A stretch of 64,000 nt of DNA from Mizuhopecten yessoensis (Eukaryota), in contig NW_018406762.1 in NCBI RefSeq assembly GCF_002113885.1, positions 1,328,834 through 1,392,833 of the forward strand, in the 5' to 3' direction. A program made the position numbers and the translations under genes. The notes under the pieces were generated by a model. The model saw nothing but the letters and a program-made list of their open reading frames with translations, searched no databases and was not told the DNA's origin. Positions 4,978 to 54,652 of this stretch are shown in pieces; positions within the stretch are counted from its first letter, which is position 1; every line of letters starts with the position of its first letter.

Positions 4978-6002
4978 TTACAGTCGGATCACGTGTACGG
5001 TACCGTCCACACATCCGATCCACACTTTCCCACATGTGTCCACACCCACCGATGTAGGTTTGGTCACTCCACGTTTCTGATCCAGGAGACACGAGGCCTG
5101 TGTACTATCTCTCGGTAGGACATACATCTGACTGTTAGTGACATTTGGTACAAACAGTCTGTCGTACTTGTCACGTGGCATCGTACATATGTCCCTACTA
5201 CCAACTTTTTGACCGTTGTTGAGTTCACCAGTCCATTTATATTTGGTTGTACCAGAACTGTCTGGTACGATTGATACATTATTTAAGTCCGACACTGCAA
5301 TGTCTCCTGACGACAAACATGTAATACACCGCCCATCCATTCCACACGGTACCTTCCTCACAATCGTACCTGCATGATTCAGTACCACTATGTCTGGTGT
5401 GTTTGTACTAACTAACACCTCATCCTTCTCGTTGATACTGATGTCGTATGCTCTATGTGGTCTGATGTCAGCAAATGTTGTCACTTGTTTGTTAGGTAGT
5501 GATAGTTTATATACAAATGTATTTACTGGGTTACTGGTCATAAGTATGTCTGTTGTCTCGACCATGGTGATTCTGTGCGGACAAAAGTCAAGTTTTACTG
5601 CCTCTTTGACCACACCCTCCCTGTTGATCAGTACCAGACCCTGGTATTCGTGTATTGATAACCACGCGTGACTGTCGTCGACTTGACTTATATCCAATAT
5701 TTGATTTTGTTGCGAAACAGTAAACTTAGAGAGACGCTGAACGTGTTTACTGTCGATGTCTGTCTTCTCGTACTGGTCCCCGTGGTGTAATTCACCTAAC
5801 ATTTTCGTCAACAGGATGCGGTTGATATTTCCGAGAACAAAGCTTGGTTGTTTTGGTGAGACATGTTTCACCTTAACGTCATACAGAGGCAGAGTTGTCC
5901 TCAATAATATTTCCGTTTCAAATATGGATACACTAGATGTATCTGTCAGTTCCGCCTTTTTAAGCAGACGCGTCAGCTCTTCGACATTTTTGTTCAATCA
6001 CC
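4978..6002 (-). pseudogene. TRIM-NHL copy 2, 5'-truncated: end of coiled coil plus complete propeller, no B-boxes, no start ATG
   Basis: 339-codon open frame KNVEELTRLL...VWIGCVDGTVHVIRL matches the C-terminal two-thirds of copy 3; homology stops at about 6002 and unrelated DNA follows to about 9040. Confidence 0.85.
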
Positions 6003-8443
6003 TTGAAAAAGGAGTTTATGATATTTCCAAATGTGTAGCATACTTACGGAAGCAGTTGATTGTGACCACCGTCCTGCTTGTCTTGATCATTCTTGTAAAA
6101 GGGAGTAGGTGTCATTCACAGTCATAGCACTCTCTTTATTTTCAAATTGAAAATTTCATTCCCGAAGGTAAATGTGACACCTTACCTTTGTGTGGTAACC
6201 TCAATGTCCAAACTCATTTGAGCCCCGGACACCAGTTCCATTAATCTGTCATCATAGTCCAATTCTCTTCCATCTACTCGTAGAACAATGGCCCCATCAC
6301 CAGGCGAACCAAAATTGTATTGCCTAACGAACACCACCAACACCTAGTTTCATCAAAAGTAAACAACTCAGAAAGGAAGTTTAATCAAATAACTACGATG
6401 CAACGGATTTTACACTGGTCCTTTGATAAAAACTCACTCCCAAATTAGAACAGTAATGTTGAAGATGAGTTGATGGACTATAGCTCTTTCATCACCAGCA
6501 ATGCCATTTTTGATCATTTACACTTCATTTCTAGCTTAGATCCCTCTCATTGCAGATGAGACAGCCAAGGTCAACACTGTTACTGTACTGCTGGTACTCC
6601 GAGAACAAAATTCAAAAGCATTCTTAGCTTGCGAATAAGTTTGTCTTACATTTATGAGTTTTAAATACGATTTTGAAATTCAACTTCTTATAAAAACATA
6701 TAAAAGATTAGTTGGATTTGCGAGTGGTGATAAATAACAACCATTTATTACCGTTATGAAAATTCGTAAATTGCTTGATGCTTTCAGATCTATACAGTGA
6801 GTCCACGTTATGTTGAAGGTGGATGTTCGGTGTAAGTTATACTTAGTATAAGGGATACGGAACTATAAGATAACCTTGGCTATTTTCCGAATTGTTAAAA
6901 TCATGAACCATCCCTATTTGTGAGGCGTCGACCTTATATATACGCGAATACATAACTATACTTTAATTACACCGACATAATGATTGCTTGTCTCTGTAAC
7001 AAATATGTGGAAATTGGCAACTCTGTAAGACACAACTTTTGTTTTGGTTACTCGAATTTTTAGGAGGAGGAGAGAATGGATTACTATTCGTTGTGATTGA
7101 TCCGGTGAAACAACCGAAGACTGTAATATAGAACATATCTGTCAGTGGCGAAATGATATCAGAGATGTATGGTTTGGGTGTTTGACCGGGGTAATTGTCT
7201 GATAAATTTCTGGTGGCTAATAAAAGTTCTGCCCCAAAATTGTATCAAAGATACACGATTTCTATATTTATAATATGGAGTTGATATTTATATGATATAA
7301 TATATTTACTTAATAACCTGATTTATCACACACCTGTTGAATATAACGAAAGGGATAAAGGCGATTGTCAGCCCATGAAATACAAGATCTTGTACTGAAC
7401 ACTCTTTCAATACAGATGTTGCACTACCCTAGCAGTCGAGGTTTTTTTAGTTTTTTTTTATAGGTAATACTAATTTTAATTTTCCATGACCCGGGTTTCA
7501 ACAATCGTACAAGTATAGTGTCCTAGCACAATAGGATTCTCATTCAATGTACATTTTCTCCATTCTATCATACATACATACACTCACACATGTATTCACA
7601 TTTTTACACGCACACATACATGCATAAATGTATATTCACATGAATACATGTATATCAATGTATTCCTACAATTTCTACATCGTTCTAACATTTTACATCG
7701 ATACGTAGCGGTACATGCAAATGCTACTTACATTCCTTTCGTCCTTGATCTTTTTCTTCTTTTCAACTTTAAACAGTCACTCGTACATACATTCTTCTCT
7801 ACTTATTTCCGTAAGCATAGATACTTGAATATAAATGCATGAAGCTATTCATTTCCTCCTTTTAATCCTTTTCTTACTGACTATGCAACTTCTTCATAAA
7901 TCATTTAGTCATTATAATTAAATATAGTTTTTTTTTTATAGATAACAAGGACAAGGTCAGTTTATTAGTTAATTATCACACATTAATAGCCTGATCAATT
8001 GTATTCATCTTTTTACTGTATAAAACTAAGACGAACTGTAAACACATTATTATATACCACGGACATACGTCTAATTACTATAATGTAATACATAAAAAAT
8101 TCACACGTACCAAACATTAATACAGTATGATATGGATAAAGTGTACGCTTCCGGTTGTTACCAACTCAATTATACATCCAATGTTTTTATCCCGGTTCAG
8201 TAGAACACATGGTTTTTGTAAGTAAAAAATCATAATTCTTGTAAAAGTGTTCGATGTGTTGTCTTAACGTTCCAAGTTTTGATTATCTGACAAGCAACAA
8301 CACAGGTAAAGTGAGCGTCAGCCTCTCAATTCGGAGTCCCATATTACAAAAAGTTGTCAACCCCCCCAACCCCCCTCCTTTCCTGCACTTATACCCTAAA
8401 ATATGTTTATGGAAATGGTTCTATTTTATTGCTTTCATGTAAA

Positions 8444-9017
8444 AGGGGCTGGTCGGGGAAAAAAATTCCAAAATAAAATAAATGGGTCTAAATGCGTTCT
8501 CTGGCCTTCCAAATGTTATACCACGGCAATATGATGGTCGATATCTGCTTGCAATGTCCAGTTGTTGGCAGTGAAGATAACAACAATAGCACGCCGTCTA
8601 TCAGGCATGTCGGACTCAACTAGCGGACAAGACAGCAATACTATACGTAAATATTTGTTTTCAAAAGTCATGTATGATGCAAGTGTAGTATTCCTACCTA
8701 TATGTTGTTGTTATATATAACGGTATTGATACCTCGTGCCTGTCATGACTTTTGCATGCATCTTTTTCTATCGCCGCGATGTTTACATTTGGCCTTGTTG
8801 ATGACGCGCATGCGGTAAAATTATATCACTGATCATGGTCAATTGAGAGTTTTAGACTGTCAGGTAACGATTTAGGATTTCTTTAATATAATTATAATTT
8901 TTGCTCTTAGGGAGTGAATTTCAGCAAAATTTGAATCGGTATATTTCATAAGAAGGTATTTTAAACATGTGTATGCCATTTTAGCAAATATGACATTTTT
9001 TCCCCCGACCAACCCCT
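8444..9017. mobile_element. Non-autonomous TIR DNA transposon, Kolobok-like
   Basis: Left end AGGGGCTGGTCGGGGAAAAAA and right end TTTTTTCCCCCGACCAACCCCT are inverted repeats; flanked by TAAA and TTAA; AG...CT termini with TTAA target fit Kolobok. Confidence 0.75.
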
Positions 9018-10069: not shown

Positions 10070-10101
<32 letters not shown>

Positions 10102-11215: not shown

Positions 11216-11928
11216 TAGTTACTTCCCTGTCTACGTAGGAATCTCTTATTTTATAGCTTCGAGTTACTTCTCTGTCTGCGTAGGAATCTCCTATTTTATA
11301 GCTGCGAGTTACTTCTCTGTCTACGTAGTAATCTCCTATTTTTTAGCTTCGTGTTACTTCTCTGTCTACGTAGGAGTCTCCTATTTTATAGCTTCGAGTT
11401 CCTTCTCTGTCTACGTAGGAATCTCTTACTTTATAGCGTCATATTACTTCCCTGTCTATGTAGGAATCTCTTATTTTATAGCTTCGAGGTACTTCTCTGT
11501 GTACGTAGGAATCTCCTATTTTATAGCTTCGAGTTCCTTCTCTGTCTACGTAGGAATCTCTTATTTTATAGCTTCGAGGTACTTCTCTGTGTACGTAGGA
11601 ATCTCCTATTTTATAGCTTCGAGTTGCTTCTCTGTCTACGTAGGAATCTCCTATTTTATAGCTTCGAGTTACTTCCCTGTCTACGTAGGAATCTCCTATT
11701 TAATAGCTTCGAGTTACTTCTCTGTCTACGTAGGAATCTCTTATTTTATAGCGTCATATTACTTCCCTGTCTACGTAGGAATCTCTTATTTTATAGCGTC
11801 ATATAACTTCCCTGTCTACGTAGGAATCTCTTATTTTATAGCGTCATATTACTTCTCTGTCTACGTAGGAATCTCTTATTTTATAGCTTCGAGTTACTTC
11901 CCTGTCTACGTAGGAATCTCTTATTTTC
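11216..11928. repeat. 45-bp minisatellite, about 16 copies
   Basis: Unit tagcttcgagttacttctctgtctacgtaggaatctcttatttta; overlapping ORFs show the 15-aa period. Confidence 0.95.
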
Positions 11929-12100
11929 ATAGACTTTTCGTCCCTTAAATTGGACTCCAATTTCGGTGCTAATTTCTTGGATGGAAATGAAAGCAAACAT
12001 TTACAACAGTAATAGTGGTGATAATGGAATTTAACTAATTGCTACCCTAAAATAAATAACAAACAATACAAAGACACAGCAGTAATACAAATAAAAAGAC

Positions 12101-12106
12101 TTTATT
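12101..12106 (-). terminator. Putative polyadenylation signal AATAAA of copy 3
   Basis: ctttatttagag is conserved about 600-700 bp past the stop of copies 2-5 (near 4283, 12101, 24857, 40090) and at 51587 for copy 6; followed on the minus strand by a GT-rich tract gctgtgtctttgtattgttt. Confidence 0.45.
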
Positions 12107-12761
12107 TAGAGTTTCAACTTTAATTGTGTTTTCTACATGAATAGAAAAAAAGAAATAATGTACAGTGTACAAACATAATACCGTTTAATAGTATGTAACT
12201 GGATATTTGTATTATTTGGAAACGAACTTTTCGAGTTACAAAACTTAATGCAGATAATTTCATGCAGCACACTCTTAAATATTGATAAAGTGTTTTTCTG
12301 TCTGATTCTTTCTCTCTCCCCCTTCTCTCTAACTACCTCTTCATCTGTGCATATAATTAATTACGTGGCGCAAAAATGTCTTCAAGAAATATTTCATCCT
12401 TGTACAAATTGTAATAATATATTTTAACTTGATGGTACTGGATCTTTACCTTAAGATGACATGAAATATTTCAAAATAAATCCTTGAAAACTAAATAAAT
12501 AAAACGAAACCTTCAGTGCAGCTCACTAGTTAATTCGTCGATCAGTTTCATGCTCAGGCAATGTCGGTTAAAAAACCTTATGACTTTAAAATGTTTTTCA
12601 CATGTCATTTACACCAATTGATCAATCGTTCGAATGTCTCTACAATATAAATCAATATTTGAGGGTATTTATCAGACATTGATGAATTGTTTGTGATGAT
12701 ATTTACATAATGTAGTATTGTACCACGAGGTCAAATGTTCACCATGTACTATATCCTCGTG

Positions 12762-14381
12762 TTACAGCCCCATCACGTGTACGGTACCGTCTCTACACCC
12801 GATCCACACGTTTCCACACTTGTCCACACCCACCGCTTTAGGTCTACTCACTCCATATTTCTGTTCCAGGAGACACGTGGCCTGTGTACTATCTCTCGGT
12901 AGGACATACACCTGGTTGTTAGTGTAGTCCGGTACAAACAGTCTGTCGTACTTGTCACGTGACATCTTACGGAATCCCCTACTACCGACCTTTTGACCGT
13001 TGTTGAGTTCACCAGTCCATTTATATTTGGTTGTACCAGAACTGTCTGTTATAATTGATACATTATCACAGTCCGACACTGCAATGTCTCCTGACGACAA
13101 ACATGTAATAAACCGCCCATCCATTCCACACGTCATCTTCCTCACAATCGTACCTGACTGATTCAGTATCACCATGTCTGGTGTAGTTGTAGTAACAAAC
13201 ACCTCGTCCATCTTGTTGATGCTGATGTCGTATGCGGCATGTGGTCTGATGTCAGCAAATGTTGTCACTTGTTTGTTGTGTAGTGATAGTTTATATACAA
13301 CTGTACTATCATGATAACTGGTCATAAGTATGTCTGTTGTCCCGTGCATGGTGATCATGTCCGGACAGAAGTCCAGTTGAACTGTCTCTTTAACCACACC
13401 CTCACTGTTGACCAGTACCATACCCTTGTATTTGTGTATTGATAACCAAGCGTTGCTGCCGTCGACTGGACATATACCGAGTATTGTATTTTGTTGAGTA
13501 ACAGTAAACTTAGAGAGACGCTGAACGTGTATACTGTCGATGTCTGTCTTCTCGTACTGGTTCCCGTGGTGTAATTCACCTAACATTTTCGTCAACAGGA
13601 CGCGGTTGATACTTCCGGTAATAAAGCTTGGATGTTTTGGTGAAACATGTTTCATATTAACGTCATACAGGGGCAGAGTTTTCCTCAATGACATTTCCGT
13701 TTCAAATATGGATACACTAGATGTATCCGTCACTTCCGTCTTTTCAAGCAGACGCGTCAGCTCTTCGACATTTTTCTCCGATCGTTGAATATCTTTCTTG
13801 TACAACAGTGATTCCTCTTTTTCTAAAGATGATAACTCGGCCAGCACTGCTTCCGCGATATAATCCACCTCTGCCTTTAACTTAGTCCTCTGTGAGTTTA
13901 CCTCTTTCCTCGTTGTATCAATGGTGTCTTTGAACGTTTTGTTCACGCGATGTCGCTCTGACGTCGCGTTATTGAAATTTGCTATTTTATCAGCTAACGT
14001 TGTCATATGTTCCTTAAAAAGTTCCATTTTGACAGACAGTTCGTCTTCAAAAGGTTTCCAGTTGTGCTGTTTATGATTTTTAGATAAACACATCGAACAA
14101 AGCAACAGGTTGCAGTCCGAGCAGAACATATCACACAGTTTACCGGGATGTAGTTTACATACCTCTGGTACAGGCTTGTCGCCCTGACGGTTAGCCTTCC
14201 CGATCGACACGACGTCATCGTTTTTAGTTTTCCTTCCGCGTGTATGGGTTTCCTTACACCGGACACATAAAATCTCCTGACAATCGTTACAGTACCATCT
14301 TACCCCGTCTTCACTGTCACACAAAGCACACGTGTAGGTAGCGGGTTCCTGGGCACGCCGTACGGACCTGTTACTTGCCAT
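12762..14381 (-). CDS. RING-less TRIM-like protein (B-box1, B-box2, coiled coil, NHL-type beta-propeller), copy 3, intact, 539 aa
   Basis: Single ORF with CxxC..CxxC...CxxCxxxH and CxxHP...CxxC...CxxC....HxxH B-boxes, a heptad-rich helical region, and blade motifs such as DKYDRLFVPDYTNNQVYVL and PKAVGVDKCGNVWIGCRDGTVHV. Confidence 0.92.
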   Translation of the reverse strand: MASNRSVRRAQEPATYTCALCDSEDGVRWYCNDCQEILCVRCKETHTRGRKTKNDDVVSIGKANRQGDKPVPEVCKLHPGKLCDMFCSDCNLLLCSMCLSKNHKQHNWKPFEDELSVKMELFKEHMTTLADKIANFNNATSERHRVNKTFKDTIDTTRKEVNSQRTKLKAEVDYIAEAVLAELSSLEKEESLLYKKDIQRSEKNVEELTRLLEKTEVTDTSSVSIFETEMSLRKTLPLYDVNMKHVSPKHPSFITGSINRVLLTKMLGELHHGNQYEKTDIDSIHVQRLSKFTVTQQNTILGICPVDGSNAWLSIHKYKGMVLVNSEGVVKETVQLDFCPDMITMHGTTDILMTSYHDSTVVYKLSLHNKQVTTFADIRPHAAYDISINKMDEVFVTTTTPDMVILNQSGTIVRKMTCGMDGRFITCLSSGDIAVSDCDNVSIITDSSGTTKYKWTGELNNGQKVGSRGFRKMSRDKYDRLFVPDYTNNQVYVLPRDSTQATCLLEQKYGVSRPKAVGVDKCGNVWIGCRDGTVHVMGL

Positions 14382-14464
14382 GATGTTGGTACTTTAGTGA
14401 GTTTAAAGGAATACTTTGCCTACAAACTGTGAAATGCCATCATTTTGATATGTCGTTACAACTT

Positions 14465-14505
14465 TATCTATACACTTCCTTGTTACGGTCATATCACGTG
14501 ACTTT
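14465..14505 (-). promoter_or_regulatory. Putative core promoter module of copy 3
   Basis: ETS-like CACTTCCT 14473-14480, E-box TCACGTGAC 14494-14502, adjacent TATA-like TATAGATAAA on the minus strand. Confidence 0.5.
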
Positions 14506-15094
14506 ACCGACAGACAGTATAAAGTCCCCGACTCCTGGCGCTAGGCCAAAAATAATCTAACTAAATGGCAGATCTTTCTATCATAACATCATAACCCTTT
14601 GGCCAAACATAATAACTATCGAAACAGAATGTTAAGTGTAGACTATGTGATGAAGTATACTATTTGCCTGTTTTTGTTAATTACTGTGTTTGATAACAGA
14701 CAGGTTATATAAATAGATATAAGCACCAGAAGGAAACATCTACAATTAAATTCAGTCTTTGGAGGACGAAGAAATTGTATGATGCACTGTAATATTATTT
14801 TTGGCATACTTTATGTATTACTTAATTTTAAAGGTGCATCAAATGTATTTGTGTTTTGTCATCGCTTTACCAAATTCATGTACATTAGATATAACGAGTT
14901 GGTCGCCGAAAAAACCCAGCCCGGTTATGATGCAGAAATGTCGCCAAATTCCCGTTAGCGCCATTTGACGTAACACACACAGTTTATGCACACGGATTCG
15001 TCACAAATGTCTGAAATTCACAAATGCTTTACTGATATGGATCACAGCACACCTAGCCACACCTAGTTAATGATCTAAGTATGCTGTTACCAAT

Positions 15095-17905
15095 ATCAGA
15101 ATAACCTATGTGAATTGCAGATATATGTGACGAACCCCTGTATGCTGTGAACCGTAGCAGTGTAGCCTATGTGAATAACAGAGATATGTGACGAACCCCT
15201 GTATGCTGTGAACCGTAGCAGTGTAGCCTACTGTAAAATGCTAAATTTTCGTGGGACATTAAATTCGGTTTATTTCGTGGATAACAAAAATCCACGAAAT
15301 TAAATCCACACGAAAACATACATTTGGTATGATATAGATAGGGGAAATCAGAAATCAGCGAAATTAAATGTCGAAATTTTAACCCCACGAAAATAAATGA
15401 TTCTACAGTGTGTCAATATCAGACATGTCTAACGAAATATTGTATTCTGTGACCAATACATGTAGCAGTGCAGCCTATGTGAATGTATGCTGTGACTAAT
15501 CGCAGTGTAGCATATGTGGTTTCGAGACATACGTATTGAACCCCTGTATGTTGTAACCCATAGCAGTGAAGCCTACGTGAATTACAAAATACGAAAAGAA
15601 CCCATGTATGCATTGACACATAGCATTGAGCTTGTGTAAATTACAGATATATGTAACGAACCCCTGTATGCTGTAACACATATCAGTGTATTCTATGTGA
15701 ATTACAGACATTTGTGAAAAAACCCTGTATGCTGTGATCCATAGCAGTGTAGCCTATGTGAATTATAGACATATTTGATAAATCCTTGTATGCTGTTACC
15801 AACAACAGTGTAGCCTATATGAATAACAGACATATGTGAACAACCCCTGAATGTTGTGACCCATAGCAGTGCAGCCTAATTGGATTTGTAAAGAACCCCT
15901 GTATGTTTGATCCATAGGAGTGTAGCCTATGTGAATTACAGAATACGAAAAGAACCCGTATGCAATGACACATAGCAGTGAGCTTGTGTGAATTACAGAT
16001 ATATGTAACGAACCCCTGTGTGCTGTATCCAAAAGCAGTGTAGCCTATGTAAATAACAGACATTTGTGAAAAATCCCTGTATGCTGTGACCCGTAGCAGT
16101 GTAGCCTATGTCACTATCAGACATATATAACGAACCCTTGTATGCTTTAACCAATAGCAGTGTAGTCTATATGAATAACAGACATATGTGAAAACCAGTG
16201 TATGCTGTGACGCGTAGCAGTGTAGCCTATGTCAATATCAGACATGTTCAACGAAATATTGTATTCGGTGATCCATAGCAGTGCAGCCTATATGAATATA
16301 TGCTGTGACCAATCGCAGTGTAGCCTATATGAATTACAGACTTACGAAAAGACCCCCTGTATGTTGTGACCCATAGCAGTGTAGCCTATGTGAATTACAG
16401 AAATATGTAACGAACCCTTGTATGCTGTGACCTATAGCACTGTAGCCTATGTGAATTACAGAAACATGTAACGAACCCTTGTATGCTATGACCCATAACA
16501 GTGTAGCCTATGTGAATTACAGAAATATTTGACGAACCCCTGTATGCAGTGACGCAGAGCAGTGTAACCTATGTGAATTACAAACATGTGTGACGAACCC
16601 CTGTATTCTGTGACCCATAGCAGTGTAGCCTATATGAATAACAGACATATGTGAACAACCCCTGCATGTTGTGACCCATAGCAGTGCAGCCTAATTGGAT
16701 TCCAGACATTTGTAAAGAACCCATGTATGCTTTAATCCATAGCAGTGTAGCCTGTGTGAATTACAGACATGTTTAACGAAATCTGGTATTTTGTGATCCA
16801 TAGCAGTGTAGCCTATGTGAATTACACAATAAGAAAAGAACCCCTGTTTGCAATGACACATAAACAAATGTAGCAATGTAGCCTGTGTGAATTACAGATA
16901 TATGTAACAAACCCGTGTATACTGTGACCCGTAGCAGTGTAGCCTTTGTCAATATCAGACATGTTTAACGAAATCTTGTATTCTCTGACCCATAGCAGTG
17001 CATCTTATATAAATGTATCATGTGACCGATCGCAGTGTAGTCTATATGAATGACAGACTTACGTAAAGAACCCCTGTATGTTGTGACTCAAAGCAGTGCA
17101 GCCTATTTGGATTCCAGACATTTGTAAAGAACCCTGTATGCTGTGATCCATAGTAGTGTAGCCTATGTGAATTACAGAATACGAAAAGATCCCCTGTATG
17201 CAATGACACATATCAGTGTAGCCTGTGTGAATTACAGACATGTTTCACGAAATCTGGTATTCTGTGATCCATAGCAATGTAGCCTATGTGAATAACAGAA
17301 TACGAAAAGAACCCCTGTATGCAATGACACATAGCAATGTAGCCTGTGTGAATTAAAGATATATGTAACAAACCCCTGTATGCTGTGATTCATAGCAGTG
17401 TAGCCTATGTGAATTACAGATATATGTGACGAACCCCTGTATGCTATGACCCGTAGCAGTGTAGCCTATAACAATATCAGACATGTTTAACGAAATCTTG
17501 TATTCTGTGACCCACAGCAGTGTAGCCTATGTGAATGTATGCTGTGACCGATCACAGTGCAGCCTAAATGGATTCCAGACATTTGTAAAGAACCCGTGTA
17601 TGCTTTGATCCATAGCGGTGTAGTCTATGTGAATTACAGATATATGTAACAAACCCCTGTATGCTGTGACCCGTAGCAGTGCAGCCTATTTGGATTCCAG
17701 ACATTTGTAAAGAACCCCTGTATGCTGTGATCCATAGCAGTGTAGCCTATGTGAATTATAGACATTTGTAAAGAACCCCTGCATGATGTTACCCATAGCA
17801 GTTCAGTCTATGTGAATTATTCAAATACGAAAATATCCCCTGTATGTTGTGACCCATAGCAGTGTAGCCTATGTGAACTACAGACACATGTAACAAACCT
17901 TTGTA
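15095..17905. repeat. 61-bp satellite-like tandem array, roughly 45 diverged units
   Basis: Consensus tatgtgaattacagacatatgtaacgaacccctgtatgctgtgacccatagcagtgtagcc; period 61 seen at 16381-16500; some shortened units. Confidence 0.95.
15231..15408. mobile_element. 178-bp MITE (CTGTA...TACAG, TA target) inserted in the satellite
   Basis: CTGTAAAATGCTAAATTTTCGTGGG versus reverse complement of the end CTGTAGAATCATTTATTTTCGTGGG; interrupts unit gccta|tgtcaatatc with TA/TG flanks. Confidence 0.85.
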
Positions 17906-19067: not shown

Positions 19068-19412
19068 ATAATAATATAATAATATACAGCATTTATATAG
19101 CGCCCTATATAATTTGTAAAATTACTCTAAGGCGCTTTACAACATATGGATAATAGTACTCCGACCGCAGTGATCTTGACGGCTGATACAGGGTAACAAG
19201 TTCCTGTAGGTACCGAGGAGCTGTTCCATTCAGTGCCTTGTATGTGTATACCAGAATTTTGTACTGCGACCTGTATCGTACAGGTAACCAGTGCAACGAA
19301 TAAACCGCAGGTGTGATGTGCTCTCTCTTTCGAGTACGAGTAACTAGACGTGCTGCAGTGTTCTGAACCCTCTGCAGACGACTAGTTAGTTTGTCAGATA
19401 TACCACAGAATA
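19068..19412 (-). mobile_element. 5'-truncated L2-clade LINE fragment
   Basis: LQRVQNTAARLVTRTRKREHITPAVYSLHWLPVRYRSQYKILVYTYKALNGTAPRYLQEL is the typical L2 ORF2 C-terminus; gcgctatataaatgc 3' end with (ATT)n tail; TCATA duplicated at 19063-19067 and 19413-19417; absent from paralogous units. Confidence 0.9.
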
Positions 19413-22400
19413 TCATACACAATTATAGTATGAGATGGCCATGGTATACACACCAATCCTCTGTATCAGTTTTATCAGCTCGTTCCACGAAAAATACCAA
19501 TGTGGCATCACCTAAATGAGAGGTCATATAATAAATAGACAATACAATTAGAAGAGAGGCAGGAGAAAATCTGTTGTCACATTGTGGTCTATATTGGCCC
19601 ATACAAAACTTAATCGTATCTTATGTAGGCAATCACACTTTCAAAGTAGTCCCGGTTTTGTTTCCCAATATCCTCTGTCAAATATCACAGTGTTAGTAAA
19701 AATATTGCTTCTCACATATAGCATTTTCTCCATTTTTCAACACTTTCACATCAATTTTAATTCAGACACTTTTATATCAAAAACAATCTTCAGAGCAGGA
19801 CAAAACATTCCAATCAAATAAAAAGAAATTGTTTCGACTTCCGTCAAGTTTCTTTGTTTACTTTCCTGCATCATTACTGAACCTTCGTGCCAAATATCAG
19901 CGCCGCAGTACCACATTTTGCAGGTTATTTAAGTATTGAACTAGCACGCCTCAGTGAAATGACTACGAATACCAACTGAAGACCGTTCAATACTTATATT
20001 TACTATTTAATTTATTTTTAAATTTCCAACCTTTTATTTATCAAGATTCCACATTTAGTACAAATAGGCGTATTATCGGTAATGCTTGTGTACAGAGAAA
20101 GCAGCTGTCTTCAAGGGAACATGAAATAATAATTGATAATAGTTAGAGAATGTTTAGAATTTCATTGTGATATTTTCCAAAAAGTCCTTATGAAGCATTA
20201 AGAATTTATACCGTGAGATGTCTTCATTTCTTAATCGTAAAGGAAAACGTTAAAACACATAAAAGAAAGTAAAAAAAAATATTGAAAGAAAAATCTTAAA
20301 TAAGGTCCAGTAAAGAAACACTTTGATAGGTGATGGGTCATGGTAACAACACCAAGTCCTCTGTAACAATATTTTAAATAGGAAAGATGTCAGTCAGTAG
20401 ATACATAGCCCTAGCTATTAACGTTATAGGTACAGGTAAATAGGAAGGATGTCATAGTCAGTAGATACATAGCCCTAGTTATTAACGTTATTGGTACAGG
20501 GGACTCAATCCCAAGAGAGATGAAACGAGAAAAACGAGAAGACAAAGGAAACTGTTTTTTTGAATATCCATCCATGGTCGTAATAATCCCCACATAGAAA
20601 CTCGCATGTACCATCTCCACATGGTACTGGTCAACCAATTACTTTTTCTATCATTTTTTTTTTGTATTTAGATTGCGTCATCATTTTTTTACTATTGCGA
20701 AGACGTTATCAGTTTGTGTTTACTATTGTTATGACGTCACCAAATATCACTTACTCCTCCTTAAGTCTCATGTAATTGTTCAGATCATATAACGTTTCCG
20801 ACGTGTTAACGTCCGTCATCGTTCATCGAAAAATACCATTGTGACATCACCTAAATGAGACGTCATATAATAGACAATACAATTAGAAGAGAGGCAGGAG
20901 GAATTATGTTGTCACATTGTTTTCTATATTGGTAATCAAACTTGCTAAGTAGCCTTTGCTTTGTTTCCCAATATCCCCTATTTCCAAATATCATAGTGTT
21001 GATAGAAATATTGATTTTCATATGCTATTTTTTTTTTTAATTGTTCAACACTTTCACATTAATTTTAATTTAGACATTTTTATATTAAAATTAAACTTCA
21101 AAACATGACAAAACATCCCAAACAATTAAAGAGAAACTATCCCTCCTTCCGTCGTGTTTCTTTGTTGACTTCCCTATATCAATGTTGAACCCCCAGGCCA
21201 AATATCAGCGTCGCAGTACCACAGTGTTTAGTTTGAAGGTTATTTAAGTATTGAACTAGCACGCCTCATTGACATGACTACGAATGTCAACTGAAGGTCG
21301 TTCAATACTTACATTAAACATTTCAAAAGATATTTCAATCTCCAACCATTAATTGGTCAAGATTCCACATTTATTACAAATAGGCGTATTATCGGATATG
21401 CTTGTGTACAGAGTACAGCAGCTGTCTTCAAGGGAACATAAAGAAATGATTAGATTTTTTTTATAAAATGTTTCAAATTTGGTCTTTTCTGAAAATTCCT
21501 AATGAAGCAATTAAAAGTTGCATCGTTATATGTGATTAAAGAAGATTTATTTCTAAAAAGTATAAGTAAACATTAAAATACATAAGAAAAATGTAAAAAA
21601 ATTATGAAGAAAAATGGTAGGTGTATTTCTTATAAGTTTGGAAAATAAATTGCATGCCATACAAAATCATGATAACTTTGCGCAAACAACTTGTAGATAG
21701 AGCTGTAGTCCTTTAACAATGATTTTTATCGATATCGATTTTTTTTTCATACTTTATTGCATGTTTATTGTACACCCTCAGGACCGTGTATGTTATAAGA
21801 TGTATATATTTACACAAATCAATATCCCATATACATGTAATACTTTCACACACTCTATTTTTACTCTTTCCAAATTTTTATACGTTAAATCAAGCCTTGT
21901 TTTGGCACATTTTCTCATACAAAGATACGTATTTGTAAACCTATAACCATTTGGATGTATTTGGTAACAAGAAGGTAGATTGTATTCTAGTTGAGAGTTC
22001 CGAATGTGTGAGAGTATATAGAACTATGTGATAATGTTTCCACTTAAATTTGAGTGTCTTTTAAAATAAAAACAGACCGCTTTATAGGATTATAAGGACA
22101 TGTTATTGTGGAGAATCAAACTGATATCACGACGATATTTAATACAGCGTAGTACATTCATGTATTCACCTGTACATGGAACTTAACGCTTCAAATATTG
22201 ATTTACAATACGTCTGTCATGACCCGAACAACTCTGGAATGAAAAAAAGGGGCGAAACAAAACACACTCAAAAAACTTTCAGTCAAAACAATACTTAATT
22301 CGTTGATCAGATTAATGATCTTTGTCGGTTAAACAATCTAATGACTTGTGTCTGTCCGATTACGGAGGTCATTAAACACAATTAAGGTCACAGTCTCTAC

Positions 22401-22504: not shown

Positions 22505-22790
22505 TTACAGTCCCAAGACTGGGACGGTACCGTCGCGACAATCGATCCACACGTGTCCACACCCACTCTTTCAGGGGTAACCAATCCGTGTCTCTGGTAA
22601 AGGACATACACCTGGTTGTTCCTCTAGTCTCGTACTTGTCACATGATGTATTATGGCTACTCCTACTACGAACCTTTTGACGATTGTTGAGTTCACCAGT
22701 CGATTTATATTTAGTTGTACTTGAACTGTGTGCTATGATTGATATATTATATCATGCCGACATTGCAACCTCTCATGACAATAAACATGC
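22505..22790 (-). pseudogene. 3'-end remnant of TRIM-NHL gene (R2)
   Basis: VYVLYQRHGLVTPERVGVDTCG; DNA homology to the last ~330 bp of the CDS and part of the 3' flank, with indels. Confidence 0.8.
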
Positions 22791-24524
22791 AGCAAAATAC
22801 ACATTTGTTTTAAACGAAAAGTTCAAATAGGTATCATTCATTTATATTGTTAAAGTAAAATGCCTCATCAAACAAAAGAAAATTGCTCCATTTTGGCTAT
22901 TCTCACACAACTTAAACAAATGGACCTTTTACAAACAAGTATGCCATTGACTAACCGGTTATTCGGTCAATTTTGTTATCAAACAATAAACAACGACAAT
23001 ACGTTATATGTTTAACAAGTGTTCTATTTAAAACGTATTTACACCACATCGTACATTTATATATTAAATATCATGATAATTTAATCGCGTATTTAAGCTA
23101 AACCCAGGAAATAATTACATGTAATCACATTTAGTATATTTCATGGACAACAAATGTCGGGATACAGTAAGGCGGGATTCAATTAGTTATCAGTACTATA
23201 AATCATATGTGGTAATATCGTTCTTTTCTACAAAGTTTGATCGACAAACATTTTAATACATGCTTGCTCATTCAAGTGTGAACTCGTCATATTATATTTA
23301 TATCTCGCATCTAAAAGTGCGTGCTACATGTACCTTTAAAGTTTATATTTCACAACTGTGTATTCTGGCTTCCTTTTAAAATCTGTCCGGTTTTCCTTTG
23401 GCGCTGGCGTGATTTCTTTGTTAATCTTTACAATAAAGTGAAAGTGAAAAAAAACCCACTTACAAGTCAGAAAATTTGTAGGTCCAAGCTGAATATGGGG
23501 CTCCCCAAAGGGGTAAATAAATGTCCGACTATTCGGTTATTGATTATTGTAACCAGTTCGTGGTCTTCCAACCAAGTAACCGGCTAACCGTTGGCAACCC
23601 TTTCCAAATTACAATGTCATTTTCGTCCATATGTCTGTATGCATGTCTGTAATGTTTGTTTTGCGAAAGACAGCCTTGATATGTGATTAAGTACGGCTTT
23701 GCTTTATGGTTTCTTCATAAACATGGATTTTCCCTTGTAATTATATACACAAATTCGTTATTTTTTTTCAGATATTCTAGTATATCATGGGAGTCTTAAT
23801 TACACAAAAACCTTTTCATGAACACATCAATAATAAGATTCATTTCTCGTAGAGAGCTTTAGAGCATCGACTTGATTTTAACAATTTTACTGTTACAAAT
23901 TATATAGCAAAGACTGAACAATTATAGTAACCTCAAAAACCCTCTCTTATTCTAGATACACAACGGGGTTTGATACCCGTCATTTAGAAATAATTAAAAA
24001 AATAACACGAAGTCGAGTTGATGTTTGAAAGAATTTGAAAGCGAAGAGTGAAGGCTGAGTGAAGTGTTGTCCAAAAATATTAAAGTTTGCCCTAATCTAA
24101 AAATTACGCAACACGAATTGTCTCACGGCTTTGGGTGTTAATATATGTAGAAAGGATAGAACATCGTAGAACGATCGTGCGTTCTATAACACTTAAACGG
24201 AACAAAAGACAATAACATTTGCTTTGAAATTCACTTAAACTAAGAGAATTTTCGATTCCCCACATCATTGCTCCCACTCCCCCCGACCCTTCCATCAAAT
24301 ATTTAACCAGCTTAGGATAGAAGATGGCGCATTGATACACATGTGAGATATTTAGTGGATTTCACAAAAAGAAGTAGGAAGCATTATGTTTTGAATAAAT
24401 AGGACAGGAAAGGAAAATAAGATAAAATTGAAATAAAATCATGAAAAATGAACACTGATATACGAACTGAACATTAAGAAATACCTTTATATATAGTACA
24501 GATGAAGCAAGCCGATTGATGTTA

Positions 24525-24658
24525 TAGCTTCGAGTTACTTCCCTGTCTACGTAGGAATCTCTTATTTTATAGCTTCGAGTTACTTTCCTGTCTACGTAGG
24601 AATCTCTTATTTTATAGCTTCGATTTACTTACCTGTCTACGTAGGAATCTCTTATTTT
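24525..24658. repeat. 45-bp minisatellite, 3 copies
   Basis: Same unit as 11216-11928. Confidence 0.9.
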
Positions 24659-25512
24659 CATAGACTTTTCGTCCCATAACTTGGACTCCAATTTCGGTGC
24701 CATTATCTTGGATGGAAGTATTAGCGTAGTGGAATATTTCATTTAAAAGCAAATATTTACATCAGTAACAGTGGTAATAATGGAATTTAACTAATTGCTA
24801 CCCTCAAATAAATAACAAACAATACAAAGACACAGCAGTAATACAAATAAACAGACTTTATTTAGAGTTTCAACTTTAATTGTGTTTTCTACATGAATAG
24901 AAAATAAGAAATAATGTACAAATATAATACCATTTAATAGTATGTAATTAGATGTTTGTATTATTTGGAAACGAACTTTTCGAGTTACAAAACTTAATGG
25001 AGATAATTTCATGCAGCACACTCTTAAATATTGATAGTGTTTTTCTGTCTGATTCTTTCTCTCTCTCTCCCTTCTCTTTAACTACCTCTTCATGTGTGCA
25101 TATGATTAATTACGTGGCGCAAAAATGTCTTCAAGAAAGATTTCATCATTGTACAAATTGAAATAATATTTTAACTTTATTGTATTGAATCTTTACCTTA
25201 ACATGACATGAAATATTTCAAAATAAATTCTTGAAAACTAAGTAAATAAATAAAACGAAACCTTCAGTGCAGCTCACTAGTTAATTCGTCGATCAGTCCC
25301 ATGGTCAGGCATTGTCGGTTCAAAAACCTTCTGACTTTAAAATGTTTTTCACAGATATCATTAACACCAATTGATCAATTGTTCGAATGTCTTTACAAAA
25401 TGAATCGATATTTTAGATATTTGTCAGACATTGATGATTGTTTGTGATGATATTTACAAAATGTAGTATTGTACCACGAGGTAAAGTGTTCATCATGTAC
25501 TCTTTCTTCGTG

Positions 25513-27131
25513 TTACAGTCTCATGACGTGTACAGTACCGTGGCCACACCCGATCCACACGTTCCCATACGTGTCCACACCCACCGCTGTAGGTCCGATC
25601 ACGCCATGTTTCTGGTCCAGGAGACATGTGGCCTGTGAACCATCTGTCGGTAAGACATACACCTGGCTGTTAATGTAGTCCGGTACAAACAGTCGGTGGC
25701 ACTTGTCACGTGACATCTTAAAGAGGTCCCTACTACCAACCTTTTGACCGTTGTTGAGTGCACCAGTCCATTTATATCTGGTTGTACCAGATCTGTCTGT
25801 TATGATCGATACATTTGTATAGTCCGACACTGCAATGTCTCCTGACGACAAACATGTAATAAACCGCCCATCCATTCCACACGTCACCTTCCTCACAATT
25901 GTTCCTGACTGATTCAGTACTATTATGTCCGGTGTAGTTGAACTAACAACACCTCTTCCCTCTTGTTGATACTGATGTCACATAGGTTATGTGATCTGAT
26001 GTCAGCAAATGTTGTCACTTGTTTGTTGTGTAGTGATAGTTTATATACAAATGTACTACGTGGATTACTGGTCATAAGTATGTCTGTTGTCCCGACCATG
26101 GTGATTCTGTACGGATAGAAGTCCAGTTTTACTGTCTCTGTGACCACACCATCCCTGTTGACCAGTATCAGTCCCTGGTATTGGTCTATTGATAACCACG
26201 CGTGACTGTCGTCGACTGGACATATATCCAATATTTGATTTCGTTGAGTAACAGTAAACGTAGAGAGACGCTGAACGTGTTTATTGTCGATGTCTGTCTT
26301 CTCGTACTGGTTCTCGTGGTGTAATTCACCTAACATTTTCGTCAACAGGACGCGGTCGATACTTCCGGTAACAAAGCTTGGTTGTTTTGGTGAAACATGT
26401 TTCATCCTAACTTCATACAGGAGCAGAGTTTTCCTCAATGACATTTCCGTTTCAAATATGGATACACCAGATGTATCCGTCACTGTAGCCTTTTCATGCA
26501 GACGCGTCAGCTCTTCGACATTTTTATCCAATCGCTGAATATCTTTCTTGTGCAGCATCGATTCTTCTTTTTCTAAAGATGATAACTCGGCCAGGACTGT
26601 ATTCGCGATAGAATCTATTTCTGCCTTTAGTTTAGTCCTCTGTGAGTTTACCTCTTTTCTGGTTGTATCAATGTTGTCTTTGAACGTTTTGTTCACGCAA
26701 TGTCTCACTGACGTCTTGTTCTTGAAATTTGCTATTTTATCAGCTATCATTGTCATTTGTTCCTTAAAATGTTCCTTTTTGACAGACAGTTCGTCTTCAA
26801 AAAGTTTCCAGTTGTGCTGTTTATGATTTTTAGATAGACATATCGAACAAATCAACTCGTTGCAGTCCGAACAGAACATATCACACAGTTTACCAGGATG
26901 TAGTTTACATACCTCTGGTACAGGCTTGTCGCCCTGACGGTTAGCCTTCCCTATCAATACTACCTCGTCGTTTTTAGTCTTCTTTCCGCGTTCATGGAAT
27001 CCCTTACACCGGTCACATAAATTCTCCTGACAGTCGTTACAATACCATCTTACCCCGTCTTCACTGTCACACAAAGCACACGTGTAGGTAACGGGTTCCT
27101 GGGCACGCCGTACGGATCTGTTACTTGCCAT
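25513..27131 (-). pseudogene. TRIM-NHL copy 4 with a single 1-bp deletion frameshift near 25948
   Basis: ATG-to-stop span is 1619 bp versus 1620 in copy 3; actaacaacacct versus agtaacaaacacct; splits into ORFs 25923-27209 and 25513-25896. Confidence 0.85.
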
Positions 27132-37775: not shown

Positions 37776-38029
37776 TTACAGTTCCAGGATTGGGACGGTA
37801 CCGTCGCGATAATCGATCCACACCTATCCAAATCCACTCTTTCATGGGTAACCAATGGCAAAGGACATACATTTGATTATTCTTCAAATCTCGTACAAAG
37901 ACTCTGTTGTACTTGTCACATAATCTTTTGACGATTGTTGAGTTCACCAGTCGATTTTTATTTAGTTGTGCGTGCTAGGATTCTTATTATAGCATGCCGA
38001 TACTGCAACCTCTCTTGACAATAAACATA
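37776..38029 (-). pseudogene. 3'-end remnant of TRIM-NHL gene (R3), most decayed
   Basis: gggacggtaccgtcgcgataatcgatccacac...ttgttgagttcaccagtc homologous to R2 and to the gene 3' ends. Confidence 0.7.
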
Positions 38030-40705: not shown

Positions 40706-42295
40706 TTACAGTCCCATCACGTGTACGGTACCGTCGTCACATCCGATCCACACGTTCCCACACGTTTCCACACCCACCGCTGTAGGTTGGATCACCCCAA
40801 GTCTCTGATCCAGGAGACACGTGGCCTGTGTACCATCTCCCTGTAGGACATACACCTGATTGTTATTGAAGTCTGGTATTAACAGTCTGTCGTACTTGTC
40901 ACATGACATATTATAGAGGTTACAACGACCAACCTTTTGACCGTTGTTGAGTTCACCAGTCCATTTATATTTGGTTGTATCAGAACTGTCTGTTATGATT
41001 GATACATTATCATAGTCCGACACTGCAATGTCTCCTGACGACAAACATGTAATAAACCGCCCATCCATTCCACATGTCATCTTCCTAACAATTGTACCTG
41101 ACTGATTCAGTATCACTATGTCTGGTGTACCTGTACTAACAAACACTTCGTCCCTGTCGTTGATGCTGATGTCATATGCTTTATGTGGTCTGATGTCAGC
41201 AAATGTTGTCACTTGTTTGTTGCTAAGTGATAGTTTATACACGTGTGTACCAAATGGAATACCGGTCATAAGTATGTCTGTTGTCTTGATCATGGTGGTG
41301 ATTCTAAATGGAGAGAAGTCCAGTTGTACTGTCTCTTTGATCACACCACCCCTGTTGACCAGTTCCAGACCCTGGTATTTGTATATTGATAACCACGCGT
41401 GACTGTCGTCGACTGGACATATACTGAATATTTGATTTTGCTGAGTAGTAGTAAAATAAGAGAGACGTTGAACGTGTCCCTTGTGTAATTCACCAAACAT
41501 TTTTTTCAGCAGGACGCGGTCGATACTTCCTGTAACAAAGCTTGATTGTTTTGGTGAAACATGTTTCATATTAACGTCATACTGGGGCAGAGTTTTCCTC
41601 AATGACACTTTCGTTTCAAATATAGATATAATAGATGCAGCCGTCAGTTCCGCCTTTTCAAGCAGACGCGTCAACTCTTTGGCATTTTTCTCTGATCGTT
41701 GAATATCTTTCTTGTAAAATAGTGCTTCTTCTTTTTCTAATGATGATAACTCGGCCAGCACTGCTTCCGCAATATCATCTACTGCTGCCTTTAACTTAGT
41801 CCTCTGTGAGTTCACCTCTTTCCTCGTTGTATCAATGTTGTCTTTGAACGTTTTGTTCACGCGATGTCGCTCTGATGTCTCGTTCTTGAAATTTGCTATT
41901 CTGTCAGCTATCGTTGTCATGTGTTCCTTAAAATGTTCCTTTTTGACAGACAGTTCGTCTTCCAAAAGTTTCCAGTTGTGCTGTTTGTGATTTGTAGATA
42001 AACATGTCAAACAAATCAACGCATTGCAGTTCGAGCAGAAAAGATCACACAGTTTACCGGGATGTAGTTTACATACCTCTGGTACAGGCTTGTCGCCCTG
42101 ACGGTTAGCCTCTCCTATCGATACGACGTCATCGTTTTTAGTTTTTTTCCCGCGTGTATGGAATTCCTTGCACCGATCACATAAATTCTCCTGACAATCG
42201 TTACAATACCATCGTACCCCGTCTTCACTATCACACAAAGCACACGTGTAGGTAACGGGTTCCTTGGCATGCTGTACGGATCTGTTGCTTGACAT
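40706..42295 (-). CDS. RING-less TRIM-NHL protein, copy 5, intact, 529 aa
   Basis: Open frame; start placed at the ATG homologous to other copies (MSSNRSV); 11-aa in-frame deletion before the propeller and 1-aa insertion relative to copy 3. Confidence 0.9.
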   Translation of the reverse strand: MSSNRSVQHAKEPVTYTCALCDSEDGVRWYCNDCQENLCDRCKEFHTRGKKTKNDDVVSIGEANRQGDKPVPEVCKLHPGKLCDLFCSNCNALICLTCLSTNHKQHNWKLLEDELSVKKEHFKEHMTTIADRIANFKNETSERHRVNKTFKDNIDTTRKEVNSQRTKLKAAVDDIAEAVLAELSSLEKEEALFYKKDIQRSEKNAKELTRLLEKAELTAASIISIFETKVSLRKTLPQYDVNMKHVSPKQSSFVTGSIDRVLLKKMFGELHKGHVQRLSYFTTTQQNQIFSICPVDDSHAWLSIYKYQGLELVNRGGVIKETVQLDFSPFRITTMIKTTDILMTGIPFGTHVYKLSLSNKQVTTFADIRPHKAYDISINDRDEVFVSTGTPDIVILNQSGTIVRKMTCGMDGRFITCLSSGDIAVSDYDNVSIITDSSDTTKYKWTGELNNGQKVGRCNLYNMSCDKYDRLLIPDFNNNQVYVLQGDGTQATCLLDQRLGVIQPTAVGVETCGNVWIGCDDGTVHVMGL

Positions 42296-42372
42296 GGTGT
42301 TGGTACTTTCACGTTTAAACTTTCCACACAAACTGTGAGTTCCTACCATTCGTTTCTGTGTCGGTACAACTA

Positions 42373-52509: not shown

Positions 52510-53025
52510 CACACTCTTAAATATTGATTAAGTGTTTATCTGTCTGAATCTTTCTCTCTACCTCTTCTCTCTTACTATCCTTTTCATGTGCGCATATGAT
52601 TTATTACATTGCGCAAAAATGTTTTAAACAAATATTTCATCATTGTACAAATTGTAATAACATATGTTAACTTTATGGTACTCGATCTTTACGTTAAGAG
52701 ATGACATGAAATATTTCTAAATAAATCCTTATAAACTAAGTAAATAATAACAAGAAATAAGCACACAAATTAATAAAACGAAACCCTCAGTGCAGTTCAC
52801 TAGTTAATTCGCTGATCAGTGACATTGCCGGTTCAAAAACCTTATTACTTTAAAATGTTTTTCAGATGTCATTAACACCAGTTGATCAATTGTTCGAATG
52901 TCTCCACAAAATGAATCGATATTTGAGGGAATTATTTAGACATTGATGAATTGTTTGTGATGATATTTACGTCATGTAGTATTTTACCACGAGGTCAAGT
53001 GATCATCATGTACTCGTTCCTCATG

Positions 53026-54652
53026 TTACAGTCTCATGACGTGTACGGTACCGTAGCCACCCCCGATCCACACGTTCCCACACGTGTCCACACCCAGCGC
53101 CATAGGTCCGATCTCTCCATGTTTCTGATCCAGGAGACACGTGGCCTGTGTACTATCTCTCGGTAGGACGTACACCTGGTTGTTAATGTAGTCTGGTACA
53201 AACAGTCTATCGTACTTGTCACATGACATCTTACAGAGGTTCCTACTACCAACCTTTTGACCGTCGTTGAGTTCACCAGTCCATTTATATTTTGTTGTAC
53301 CAGATCTGTTGGTTATGATCGATACATTTATATAGTCCGACACTGCAATGTCTCCTGACGACAAACATGTTATAAACACAACGGGACCCATTCCACACGT
53401 CACCTTCCTCACAATCGTACCTGACTGATTCAGTACCTATATGTCTGGTGTACCTGTACTAGCAAACACCTCGTCCCTCTCGTTGATACTGATGTCGTAT
53501 GCGTTATGTGGTCTGATGTCAGCAAATGTTGTCACTTGTTTGTTGTGTAGTGATATTTTATATACAAATGTACTATGTGGATTACTGCTCATAAGTATGT
53601 CTGTTGTCCCGACCATGTTGATTCTGTACGGACAGAAGTCCAGTTTTACTGTATCTATGACCACACCCTCCCTGTTTACCATTACCAGACCCTGGTATTG
53701 GTCTATTGATAACCACGCGTGGCTGTCGCCGACGGGACATATACTCAATATTTGACTTTGCTGAGTAACAGTAAACTGAGAGAGACGTTGAACGTGTTTA
53801 CTGTCGATGTCTGTCTTCCGGTACTGGTTCTCGTGGTGTAATTCACCGAACATTTCCTTCAACAGGACGCGGTCGATACTTCCGGTAACAAAGCTTGGTT
53901 GTTTTGGTGAAACATGTTTCATCTTAACGTCATACAGGAGCAGAGTTTTCCTCAATGACTTTTCCGTTTCAAATATGGATACACTAGGTGTATCCGTCAG
54001 TTCCGCCTTTTCAAACAGACGCGTCAACTCTTTTTTTTCTCATTTTTCTCCAATCGCTGAATATCTTTCTTGTGCAGCATCGATTCTTCTTTTTCTAAAG
54101 ATGATAACTCGGACAGGACTGCATCCGCGATAGAATCTACTTCTGCCTTTAACTTAGTCCTTTGTGAGTTCACCTCTTGCCTCGTTGTATCAATGTTGGC
54201 TTTGAACGTTTTGTTCACGCAATGTCGCTCTGACGTCTCTTTCTTAAAATTTGCTATTTTATCAGCTATCGTTGTCATATGTTCCTTAAAATGTTCCTTT
54301 TTGCAAACAGTTCGTCTTCAAAAAGTTTCCAGTTGTGTTGTTTATGATTTTTAGATAAACATATCGAACAAATCAACTGGTTGCAGTCCGAGCAGAACAT
54401 ATCACACAGTTTACCGGGATGTAGTTTACATACCTCTGGTACAGGCTTGTCGCTCTGGCGGGTAGCCTTCCCTATCGCCACGACGTCATCGTTTTTAGTT
54501 TTCTTTCCGCGTTCATGGAATTCCTTACACCGGCCACATAAATTCTCCTGACAATCGTTACAGTACCATCTTACCCCGTCTTCACTGTCACACAAAGCAC
54601 ACGTGTAGGTAACGGGTTCCTGAGCACGCCGTACGGATCTGTTACTTGCCAT
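53026..54652 (-). pseudogene. TRIM-NHL copy 6, pseudogene with two frameshifts and a nonsense codon
   Basis: 1-bp deletion near 54303, net +5 bp near 54031-54040, TAG at 53437-53439, plus an in-frame +3; span 1627 = 1620-1+5+3. Confidence 0.9.

Follow-up and report, generated by a model that had tools for sequence, protein, structure and literature searches.

Class VII TRIM-NHL proteins, which include Brat, LIN-41/TRIM71, TRIM2, TRIM3, TRIM32/Thin, and Mei-P26, are built from one or more B-boxes, a long coiled coil, and, at the C terminus, a six-bladed NHL propeller that is closed by an N-terminal strand, and the known members are single-copy conserved developmental regulators. Ligands of Brat, LIN-41, and the human TRIM-NHL proteins are bound on the top face of the propeller (PMC9070667, PMC9634614), which in Brat, LIN-41, and Mei-P26 is the RNA-binding surface (PMC9070667). 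Recognition domains that diversify under selection have been described in TRIM5alpha and the fish finTRIM, btr, and hltr proteins (class IV TRIM), which combine lineage-specific tandem expansion with a conserved RING/B-box/coiled-coil (RBCC) scaffold and in which comparisons of site models M1a with M2a and M7 with M8 detect positive selection in the B30.2/PRY-SPRY loops (PMC3137616). In Podospora, the HNWD NLRs encoded by het-d, het-e, and het-r contain WD40 repeats with four hypervariable codons that are under diversifying selection and lie on the interaction surface (PMC12222747). The 64,000-nucleotide window analyzed here, positions 1328834 to 1392833 of scaffold NEDP02003435.1 in assembly GCA_002113885.2 of the Yesso scallop, Mizuhopecten yessoensis, contains a tandem array of intronless genes encoding proteins with two B-boxes, a coiled coil, and an NHL propeller, in which positive selection falls on the top side of the propeller and is not detected in the N-terminal half of the same genes. 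The placement rests on a locus of that scaffold that matches window 58470-64000 at 100% identity and on the NCBI names of the homologues. In evolutionary behavior the closest described systems are finTRIM/btr/hltr and TRIM5alpha; in the use of a propeller the closest are the Podospora HNWD NLRs.

Six copies of the gene, all on the minus strand and all intronless, were found in the window by tblastn with an intact copy as the query. Copies c3 and c5 are intact, c0 runs off the start of the window, c2 is truncated at its 5' end, c4 is frameshifted, and c6 is a pseudogene. The full-length product has ~539 amino acids. The intact intronless gene c3 (12762..14381, minus strand), characterized from its open reading frame and with Pfam, AlphaFold, and Foldseek, encodes 539 residues, with the two B-boxes at ~14052-14333, the coiled coil at ~13665-14051, and the NHL propeller at 12765-13523. 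B-box1 is preceded by 16 residues, the frame is closed by a stop 5 codons upstream of the ATG, and the start methionine is common to 35 of 35 aligned homologues. Pfam matched the B-box (PF00643) twice (E = 8.6e-13) and found nothing else, including no RING. Residues 10-152 align with the B-box1, B-box2, and coiled-coil region of KAP1/TIF1-beta (TRIM28; E = 1.6e-14, phmmer against PDB), which is the best PDB sequence match for this part of the protein and accounts for the "transcription intermediary factor" labels attached by automatic annotation. KAP1/TIF1-beta shares these elements but, unlike the scallop protein, has a RING and a PHD-bromodomain C terminus, lacks an NHL domain, and has not undergone family expansion. 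The zinc ligands C18, C39, C42, H46, C75, H78, C87, C90, C95, C98, and H103 are invariant among 35 homologues. The AlphaFold full-length model places B-box1 at residues ~17-62, B-box2 at ~73-110, and the propeller at 287-538, and the coiled coil is a single continuous helix of 107 residues (111-217) with a return helix (222-239). No hydrophobic segment was found in the protein, which is therefore intracellular; for the same reason a secreted or membrane receptor was rejected.

The AlphaFold domain model of residues 250-539, built with 37 homologues, has a predicted local distance difference test score (pLDDT) of 88.3 and a predicted template modeling score (pTM) of 0.84 and contains 24 strands, which form six four-stranded blades. 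The closest PDB folds identified with Foldseek are the NHL domains of Thin/TRIM32, TRIM2, TRIM3, TRIM71, Brat, Mei-P26, and LIN-41, with E values down to 7e-15 and template modeling (TM) scores of ~0.71, and propeller sequence identity to these domains is only 11-15%. In phmmer searches, the hits to the last blades were the designed NHL protein Pizza6 and the NHL domain of PknD. The Pfam NHL repeat (PF01436) gave no match at E <= 0.1 in c3, c5, or c2, so that the NHL assignment rests on the fold and on weak PDB sequence matches. Class VII TRIM-NHL proteins are therefore the best structural matches of the scallop proteins, which differ from them in having neither a RING nor a filamin domain, in being missed by the Pfam NHL model, in their low propeller identity, and in forming a tandem multigene family under positive selection. 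The original prediction had described the genes as a RING-less TRIM-NHL family, and the two B-boxes, the coiled coil, the six-bladed NHL propeller, and the missing RING agree with that description. Because the RING is missing, we describe the proteins as TRIM-like and do not assign them to class VII.

Strands A to D of each blade were assigned from the AlphaFold model together with the NHL signature. AVGVD, NVWIG, and TVHVM form strands A, B, and C, respectively, of the last blade. In this model-based assignment the first N-terminal strand closes blade 6, and the Mei-P26 propeller is likewise closed by an N-terminal strand (PMC9070667). The window copies had been described as differing at two positions per blade, one before the first strand and one after the second. 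All of the quoted motif strings (CPHR/CPDM/YPYR/SPFR/CPYR, SNPVN/SYHDS/SNPRS/GIPFG/SNPHS, GCVD/GCRD/GCGH/GCDD/GGGY, and the others) were found in the translations of c2 to c6, and in the AlphaFold model the two positions correspond to the D-A loops with the start of strand A and to the B-C loops, respectively. The strands KQVTTFADIR and ITCLSSGDIAVSD are identical in five of five copies. Columns with at least three states among c2 to c6 make up 12 of 24 in the B-C loops, 6 of 45 in the D-A loops, and 7 of 35 in strand A, with 0 to 3 per class in strands B to D and in the A-B and C-D loops, 4 of 115 in the B-boxes, and 8 of 170 in the coiled coil; variable columns are enriched in the top loops over the remaining propeller (Fisher p = 0.0017). 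Pairwise identity between window copies is 72-82% in the NHL domain and 84-94% in the B-boxes, which are the most conserved part of the protein, although "almost invariant," as they had been called, overstates it.

Coding DNA of the paralogs was taken from the same assembly, and the codon alignment comprised 17 intact genes and c0, plus the three broken window copies masked at their breaks. Site models were run on the 18 intact sequences, with the propeller on its own tree. Pairwise synonymous divergence (dS) was unsaturated (0.04-0.57), and the ratio of nonsynonymous to synonymous divergence (dN/dS, or ω) of whole genes was 0.41-0.83. Pooled Nei-Gojobori estimates of ω were 0.21-0.29 for the B-boxes, 0.42-0.69 for the coiled coil, 0.59-0.74 for the strands, 0.33-0.68 for the bottom loops, and 0.90-1.04 for the top loops, with dS alike across the classes. 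An elevated mutation rate of the loops was rejected because dS of the top loops is about that found elsewhere. The mean ω of the top-loop codons is indecisive by itself, and site models were used for this reason. For the propeller (M0 ω = 0.81), the log likelihood (lnL) was -6315.9 under M1a and -6234.7 under M2a, giving a likelihood ratio statistic (2ΔlnL) of 162 (p = 5e-36) with ω2 = 4.29 at 10.2% of the sites; 2ΔlnL was 190 for M7 versus M8 and 156 for M8a versus M8. Fourteen sites had a posterior probability >0.95 (c3 residues 299, 301, 357, 358, 382, 384, 399, 424, 438, 469, 486, 487, 513, and 530). All 14 are located on the side of the D-A and B-C loops: the B-C loops hold seven, the D-A loops four, and the first two residues of strand A the other three. 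None was found among the 149 codons of strands B to D and of the A-B and C-D loops, and the contrast between top and bottom loops was significant (Fisher p = 0.0023). The selected columns are ungapped apart from one insertion in blade 4.

The 286 N-terminal codons of the same genes had a M0 ω of 0.44 and showed no positive selection (M1a versus M2a, 2ΔlnL = 2.4, p = 0.30). Blades 1 to 3 and blades 4 to 6, each analyzed on its own tree, retained the signal (2ΔlnL = 86 and 60), whereas simulations under M1a on the fitted tree, or of two-tree mosaics analyzed on one tree, gave 2ΔlnL of 0-1.8. These controls with the N-terminal half, the half propellers, and the simulations indicate that gene conversion is not the source of the signal. 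The original prediction of a constant N-terminal scaffold with a variable top face, for which dN/dS at the loops and a structural clustering of the variable sites had been named as tests, is supported both by the selection contrast and by the site locations.

Like TRIM5alpha and the finTRIM proteins, the scallop family is lineage specific and combines selection on C-terminal recognition loops with a conserved N-terminal scaffold. In contrast, the recognition domain of those proteins is a B30.2 beta-sandwich instead of an NHL propeller, and they retain the RING E3 ligase. TRIM5alpha, unlike any member of the scallop family, has a demonstrated antiviral role. The Podospora HNWD NLRs share with the scallop proteins a beta-propeller sensor with few hypervariable positions per repeat. 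They differ in having a WD40 fold and a NACHT/HET N terminus where the scallop proteins have an NHL propeller and a B-box/coiled-coil part, and in the concerted evolution that keeps their intragenic repeats 80-100% identical, whereas the blades of c3 are mutually 11-38% identical and show no concerted evolution. Furthermore, the diversity of the HNWD NLRs is allelic and between repeats, whereas in the scallop it lies between paralogs.

The variable face is not confined to this array. Approximately 35 paralogs were found in M. yessoensis, and in a quick protein tree 18 of them form one clade (Shimodaira-Hasegawa-like approximate likelihood ratio test [SH-aLRT], 96), whereas the Ylistrum and Pecten paralogs fall in clades of their own. 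At the 14 positions selected in Mizuhopecten, mean entropy was 1.05 in the Pecten clade (0.32 elsewhere, p = 1e-4) and 1.36 in the Ylistrum clade (0.46 elsewhere, p = 2.5e-7). Because these separate clades vary at the same positions, the variable face is a property of the family and not of a single array. A search of 1.84 billion representative proteins found full-length relatives of ~550 amino acids with 21-30% identity, the named ones in Pinctada, Tegillarca, Argopecten, and Ylistrum, which makes the pectinid family one branch of a wider bivalve B-box/NHL superfamily.

By the standard convention for propellers, the D-A and B-C loops both lie on the top face. The same orientation follows from TRIM2, in which the C terminus of the NHL domain is on the bottom surface (PMC9634614): the C terminus follows strand C and lies at the bottom, and strand C must therefore start at the top. 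Tyr, Asn, Phe, and Lys are the commonest residues at the selected positions, and the net charge of the top loops varies between paralogs from -6 to +4 (a one-dimensional count and not an electrostatic map). By this count the paralogs, unlike the RNA-binding class VII proteins, show no evident conserved basic top surface. A surface rich in Tyr, Asn, and Phe looks more like a protein-binding hot spot than like the conserved basic surface of Brat and LIN-41, and on the basis of charge and residue composition we rank protein or mixed recognition above recognition of RNA only.

At least one of the intact copies, whose expression the original prediction had named as a test, is probably expressed. 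Contig coverage of c3 was examined on window positions 11950-15100 at >=97% identity. In three contig sets, each from a different study, coverage of this interval is essentially confined to 12586-14281, that is, coding sequence and ~170 nucleotides of 3' flank, with no coverage of the 5' flank at 14282-15100 and almost none at 11950-12585. A fourth run contains one 2,552-nucleotide contig with two mismatches that ends at 14449, 68 nucleotides upstream of the ATG. Coverage of this shape is unlike that of DNA libraries and indicates that c3 is probably transcribed as an intronless mRNA. The contigs also contain variants: the base at 12974 (c3 codon 470, F>L) is nonreference in four of four runs, and that at 14263 (codon 40, V>D) is nonreference in both runs that cover it (X1 and X4; depth was zero in X2 and X3). 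Six more positions in c3 vary, each in some of the runs, and each of the four studies contains the locus with few differences.

On balance we consider it probable that the genes constitute a diversified germline repertoire of RING-less B-box/coiled-coil/NHL proteins that recognize variable intracellular targets. The scallop-lineage tandem array of intronless genes, whose products would be cytosolic and TRIM-like, turns over by birth and death. By analogy with solved TRIM structures, the two zinc-binding B-boxes and the long coiled-coil helix may form an antiparallel dimer or a higher-order scaffold, and this part is held under purifying selection. The propeller keeps its strands and bottom loops, and its top face is diversified by positive selection in every blade, with one or two positions affected in the D-A loop or where strand A begins and in the B-C loop, so that every paralog would display a propeller pair of distinct binding specificity. 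The targets would be fast evolving and inside the cell, most plausibly viral, parasite, or mobile-element proteins or nucleic acids. With no RING, the output would come through partners recruited by the B-box/coiled-coil scaffold or through direct sequestration of the target. An immune role is suggested by these features, and an antiviral or innate-sensing function by analogy with TRIM5alpha and finTRIM.

Several points weigh against this interpretation. Half of the window copies are broken, and part of the family is thus decaying. With the RING lost, the proteins have no known output activity. The assignment of faces derives from strand topology and not from model coordinates. All 23 listed runs are stored as contigs, their "RNA" label is a guess, and many of the short contigs could stem from paralogs. 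The site models were run with our own GY94-F3x4 likelihood code and not with PAML or HyPhy, and branch lengths were fitted under M0 and then only scaled. Gene conversion can inflate likelihood ratio tests, and it is present here, as P0009 changes place between the N-terminal and C-terminal trees. Some of these observations would also fit a family without adaptive diversification, in which constraint is relaxed as the genes decay or gene conversion and misalignment mimic selection: whole-gene ω is high (0.41-0.83), truncation or a frameshift affects three of the six window copies, the mean ω of the top-loop codons taken together reaches only 0.9-1.04, and the trees of the two gene halves disagree on P0009. 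Relaxation, however, cannot push ω above 1, and M2a and M8 describe the data far better than do M1a and M8a (2ΔlnL of 156-190). Only intact genes entered the analysis, the N-terminal half of the same genes serves as a negative internal control, simulated mosaics stay below a 2ΔlnL of 2, the selected columns are ungapped except for the insertion in blade 4, and the equally exposed bottom loops have ω of 0.33-0.68 and no selected sites. Relaxed constraint and a gene-conversion artifact were accordingly rejected on the M2a and M8 fits, the N-terminal control, the half-propeller tests, and the simulated mosaics, and an explanation without adaptation is very improbable and largely refuted.

If diversification is adaptive, its object could still be other than a pathogen. 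The paralogs may be RNA-binding regulators whose propellers read different RNA motifs, in endogenous mRNAs or transposon transcripts, and act in posttranscriptional control or genome defense and not in pathogen sensing. The nearest folds are RNA-binding NHL domains, the top surface binds RNA in Brat, LIN-41, and Mei-P26 (PMC9070667), and the selected sites ring the top of the central channel. We regard this explanation as unlikely, since identity to those domains is only 11-15%, the top-loop net charge of -6 to +4 gives, as a one-dimensional estimate, no conserved electropositive face, and selected positions with much Tyr, Asn, and Phe are more usual in protein-binding hot spots. More improbable still, in our estimate, is that the proteins act as adaptors whose substrates or cargo are endogenous proteins (as partners of RING-bearing TRIMs, for example) and that they diverged by ordinary subfunctionalization with no host-parasite conflict. 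A RING-less TRIM-like protein with a conserved oligomerization module could heterodimerize with other TRIMs, and the top surfaces of the human NHL paralogs also differ from one another (PMC9634614). However, an ω of ~4 at the same sites across many recent duplicates, recurring in independent expansions in three genera, points to a continuing diversifying pressure and not to a single subfunctionalization, and high turnover with pseudogenes is typical of conflict-driven families.

Recognition of variable intracellular targets by these proteins would bear on a process that in bivalves is largely obscure, the recognition of intracellular pathogens. Bivalves suffer viral mass mortalities and are not known to have adaptive immunity; the NHL domain type is not known to serve in animal immunity. 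The family carries the evolutionary signature of recognition proteins, that is, lineage-specific tandem expansion, gene turnover, and an ω of ~4 at a defined binding surface, which is already known from TRIM5, finTRIM, and the fungal NLR propellers and is found here on an NHL propeller with a RING-less scaffold. More tentatively, pectinids, and perhaps bivalves generally, might possess an intracellular recognition repertoire built on NHL propellers in place of B30.2, LRR, or immunoglobulin domains, with dozens of germline paralogs, each with a top face of its own specificity directed at proteins or RNAs of pathogens or mobile elements, that have no intrinsic E3 ligase; such a repertoire would be a restriction-factor-like system. 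We found no paper on face-specific positive selection in mollusc NHL domains, although our coverage of the literature was incomplete and such a study may already be published. The 14 candidate specificity-determining residues and their natural variants can be used in ligand-binding tests.

The tandem arrangement proposed originally is real, and to the copies then listed are added one at the window start and four NHL relics; only c3 and c5 are intact. At the window start, c0 (1..264, minus strand; tblastn) contributes residues 1-88 and continues in the scaffold beyond the window, with its residues 174-539 at positions 2-1099 of scaffold stretch L005. Copy c2 (4978..5991, minus strand; tblastn and nucleotide alignment) consists of residues 203-539 only and lacks residues 1-202; the sequence upstream of the start of homology is unrelated, with an in-frame TGA directly upstream. 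Copy c4 (25513..27131, minus strand) is full length, but 1 bp is missing from a TTT run near 25947 (codon 395), which throws it out of frame; this may reflect either a pseudogene or an assembly error. The intact c5 (40706..42295, minus strand) encodes 529 amino acids from the conserved ATG; it has lost 11 codons in frame from the linker and gained 1 codon in blade 2. Copy c6 (53026..54652, minus strand) has lost 1 bp near 54302 and gained 5 bp near 54040, and a stop codon interrupts its frame at 53437-53439; it is therefore a real pseudogene. The relics, all on the minus strand and found by tblastn, are a fragment of NHL blades 5 and 6 at 1902..2174 (residues ~424-525, 50% identity) and degraded NHL sequences at 22508..22796 (three reading frames), 37779..37971, and 62790..63063 (three reading frames). 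These four multiframe relics of blades 5 and 6 have 45-57% identity and lie ~3 kb downstream of several copies, which indicates that an older gene fragment belongs to the duplicated unit. The units of the array are ~12-15 kb long and share 80-89% identity in their noncoding flanks as well.

The 5.8-kb segment containing c2 (window 2505-8261) recurs ~70 kb away on the scaffold (L001 1840-7604, scaffold ~1401319-1407083) as a twin with 99.46% identity. The neighboring genes c0 and P0002 are nearly identical as well (dS, 0.036), and the two observations together point to a recent segmental duplication of >10 kb within the array. The public (NCBI) gene model for the twin (L001 1-5131) has a 539-amino-acid product, starts >4 kb upstream, and ends in the truncated copy, which implies a 5' exon spliced onto an NHL-only copy; if this model is real, truncated copies could supply alternative 3' exons. 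An in-frame TGA lies in the window between the sole plausible acceptor and the start of homology in c2 and argues against a simple acceptor, and c2 is for this reason provisionally taken as truncated and not as a spliced 3' exon.

Several repeats accompany the genes. A 61-bp satellite extends for up to 2.8 kb upstream of c3 (15105-17900), and shorter arrays of it occur upstream of c4 and c6 (27739-28213, 30253-30463, and 57212-57557). A 45-bp satellite is located downstream of c3 (11217-11932, and also 24522-24663), with 16 copies and 90% matches; the 150-amino-acid open reading frames at 11351-11948 were rejected as genes because they are read-through of this satellite. The open reading frames at 54839-55603 (plus strand) and 19105-19422 (minus strand) resemble the tails of retroelement Pol proteins; that at 54839-55603, immediately upstream of c6, had no Pfam match. 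An 18-bp tandem repeat is present in 22 copies at 31034-31434, and the Gly/Val-rich and Pro/Met-rich open reading frames on both strands at 30919-31459 were rejected as artifacts of this repeat.

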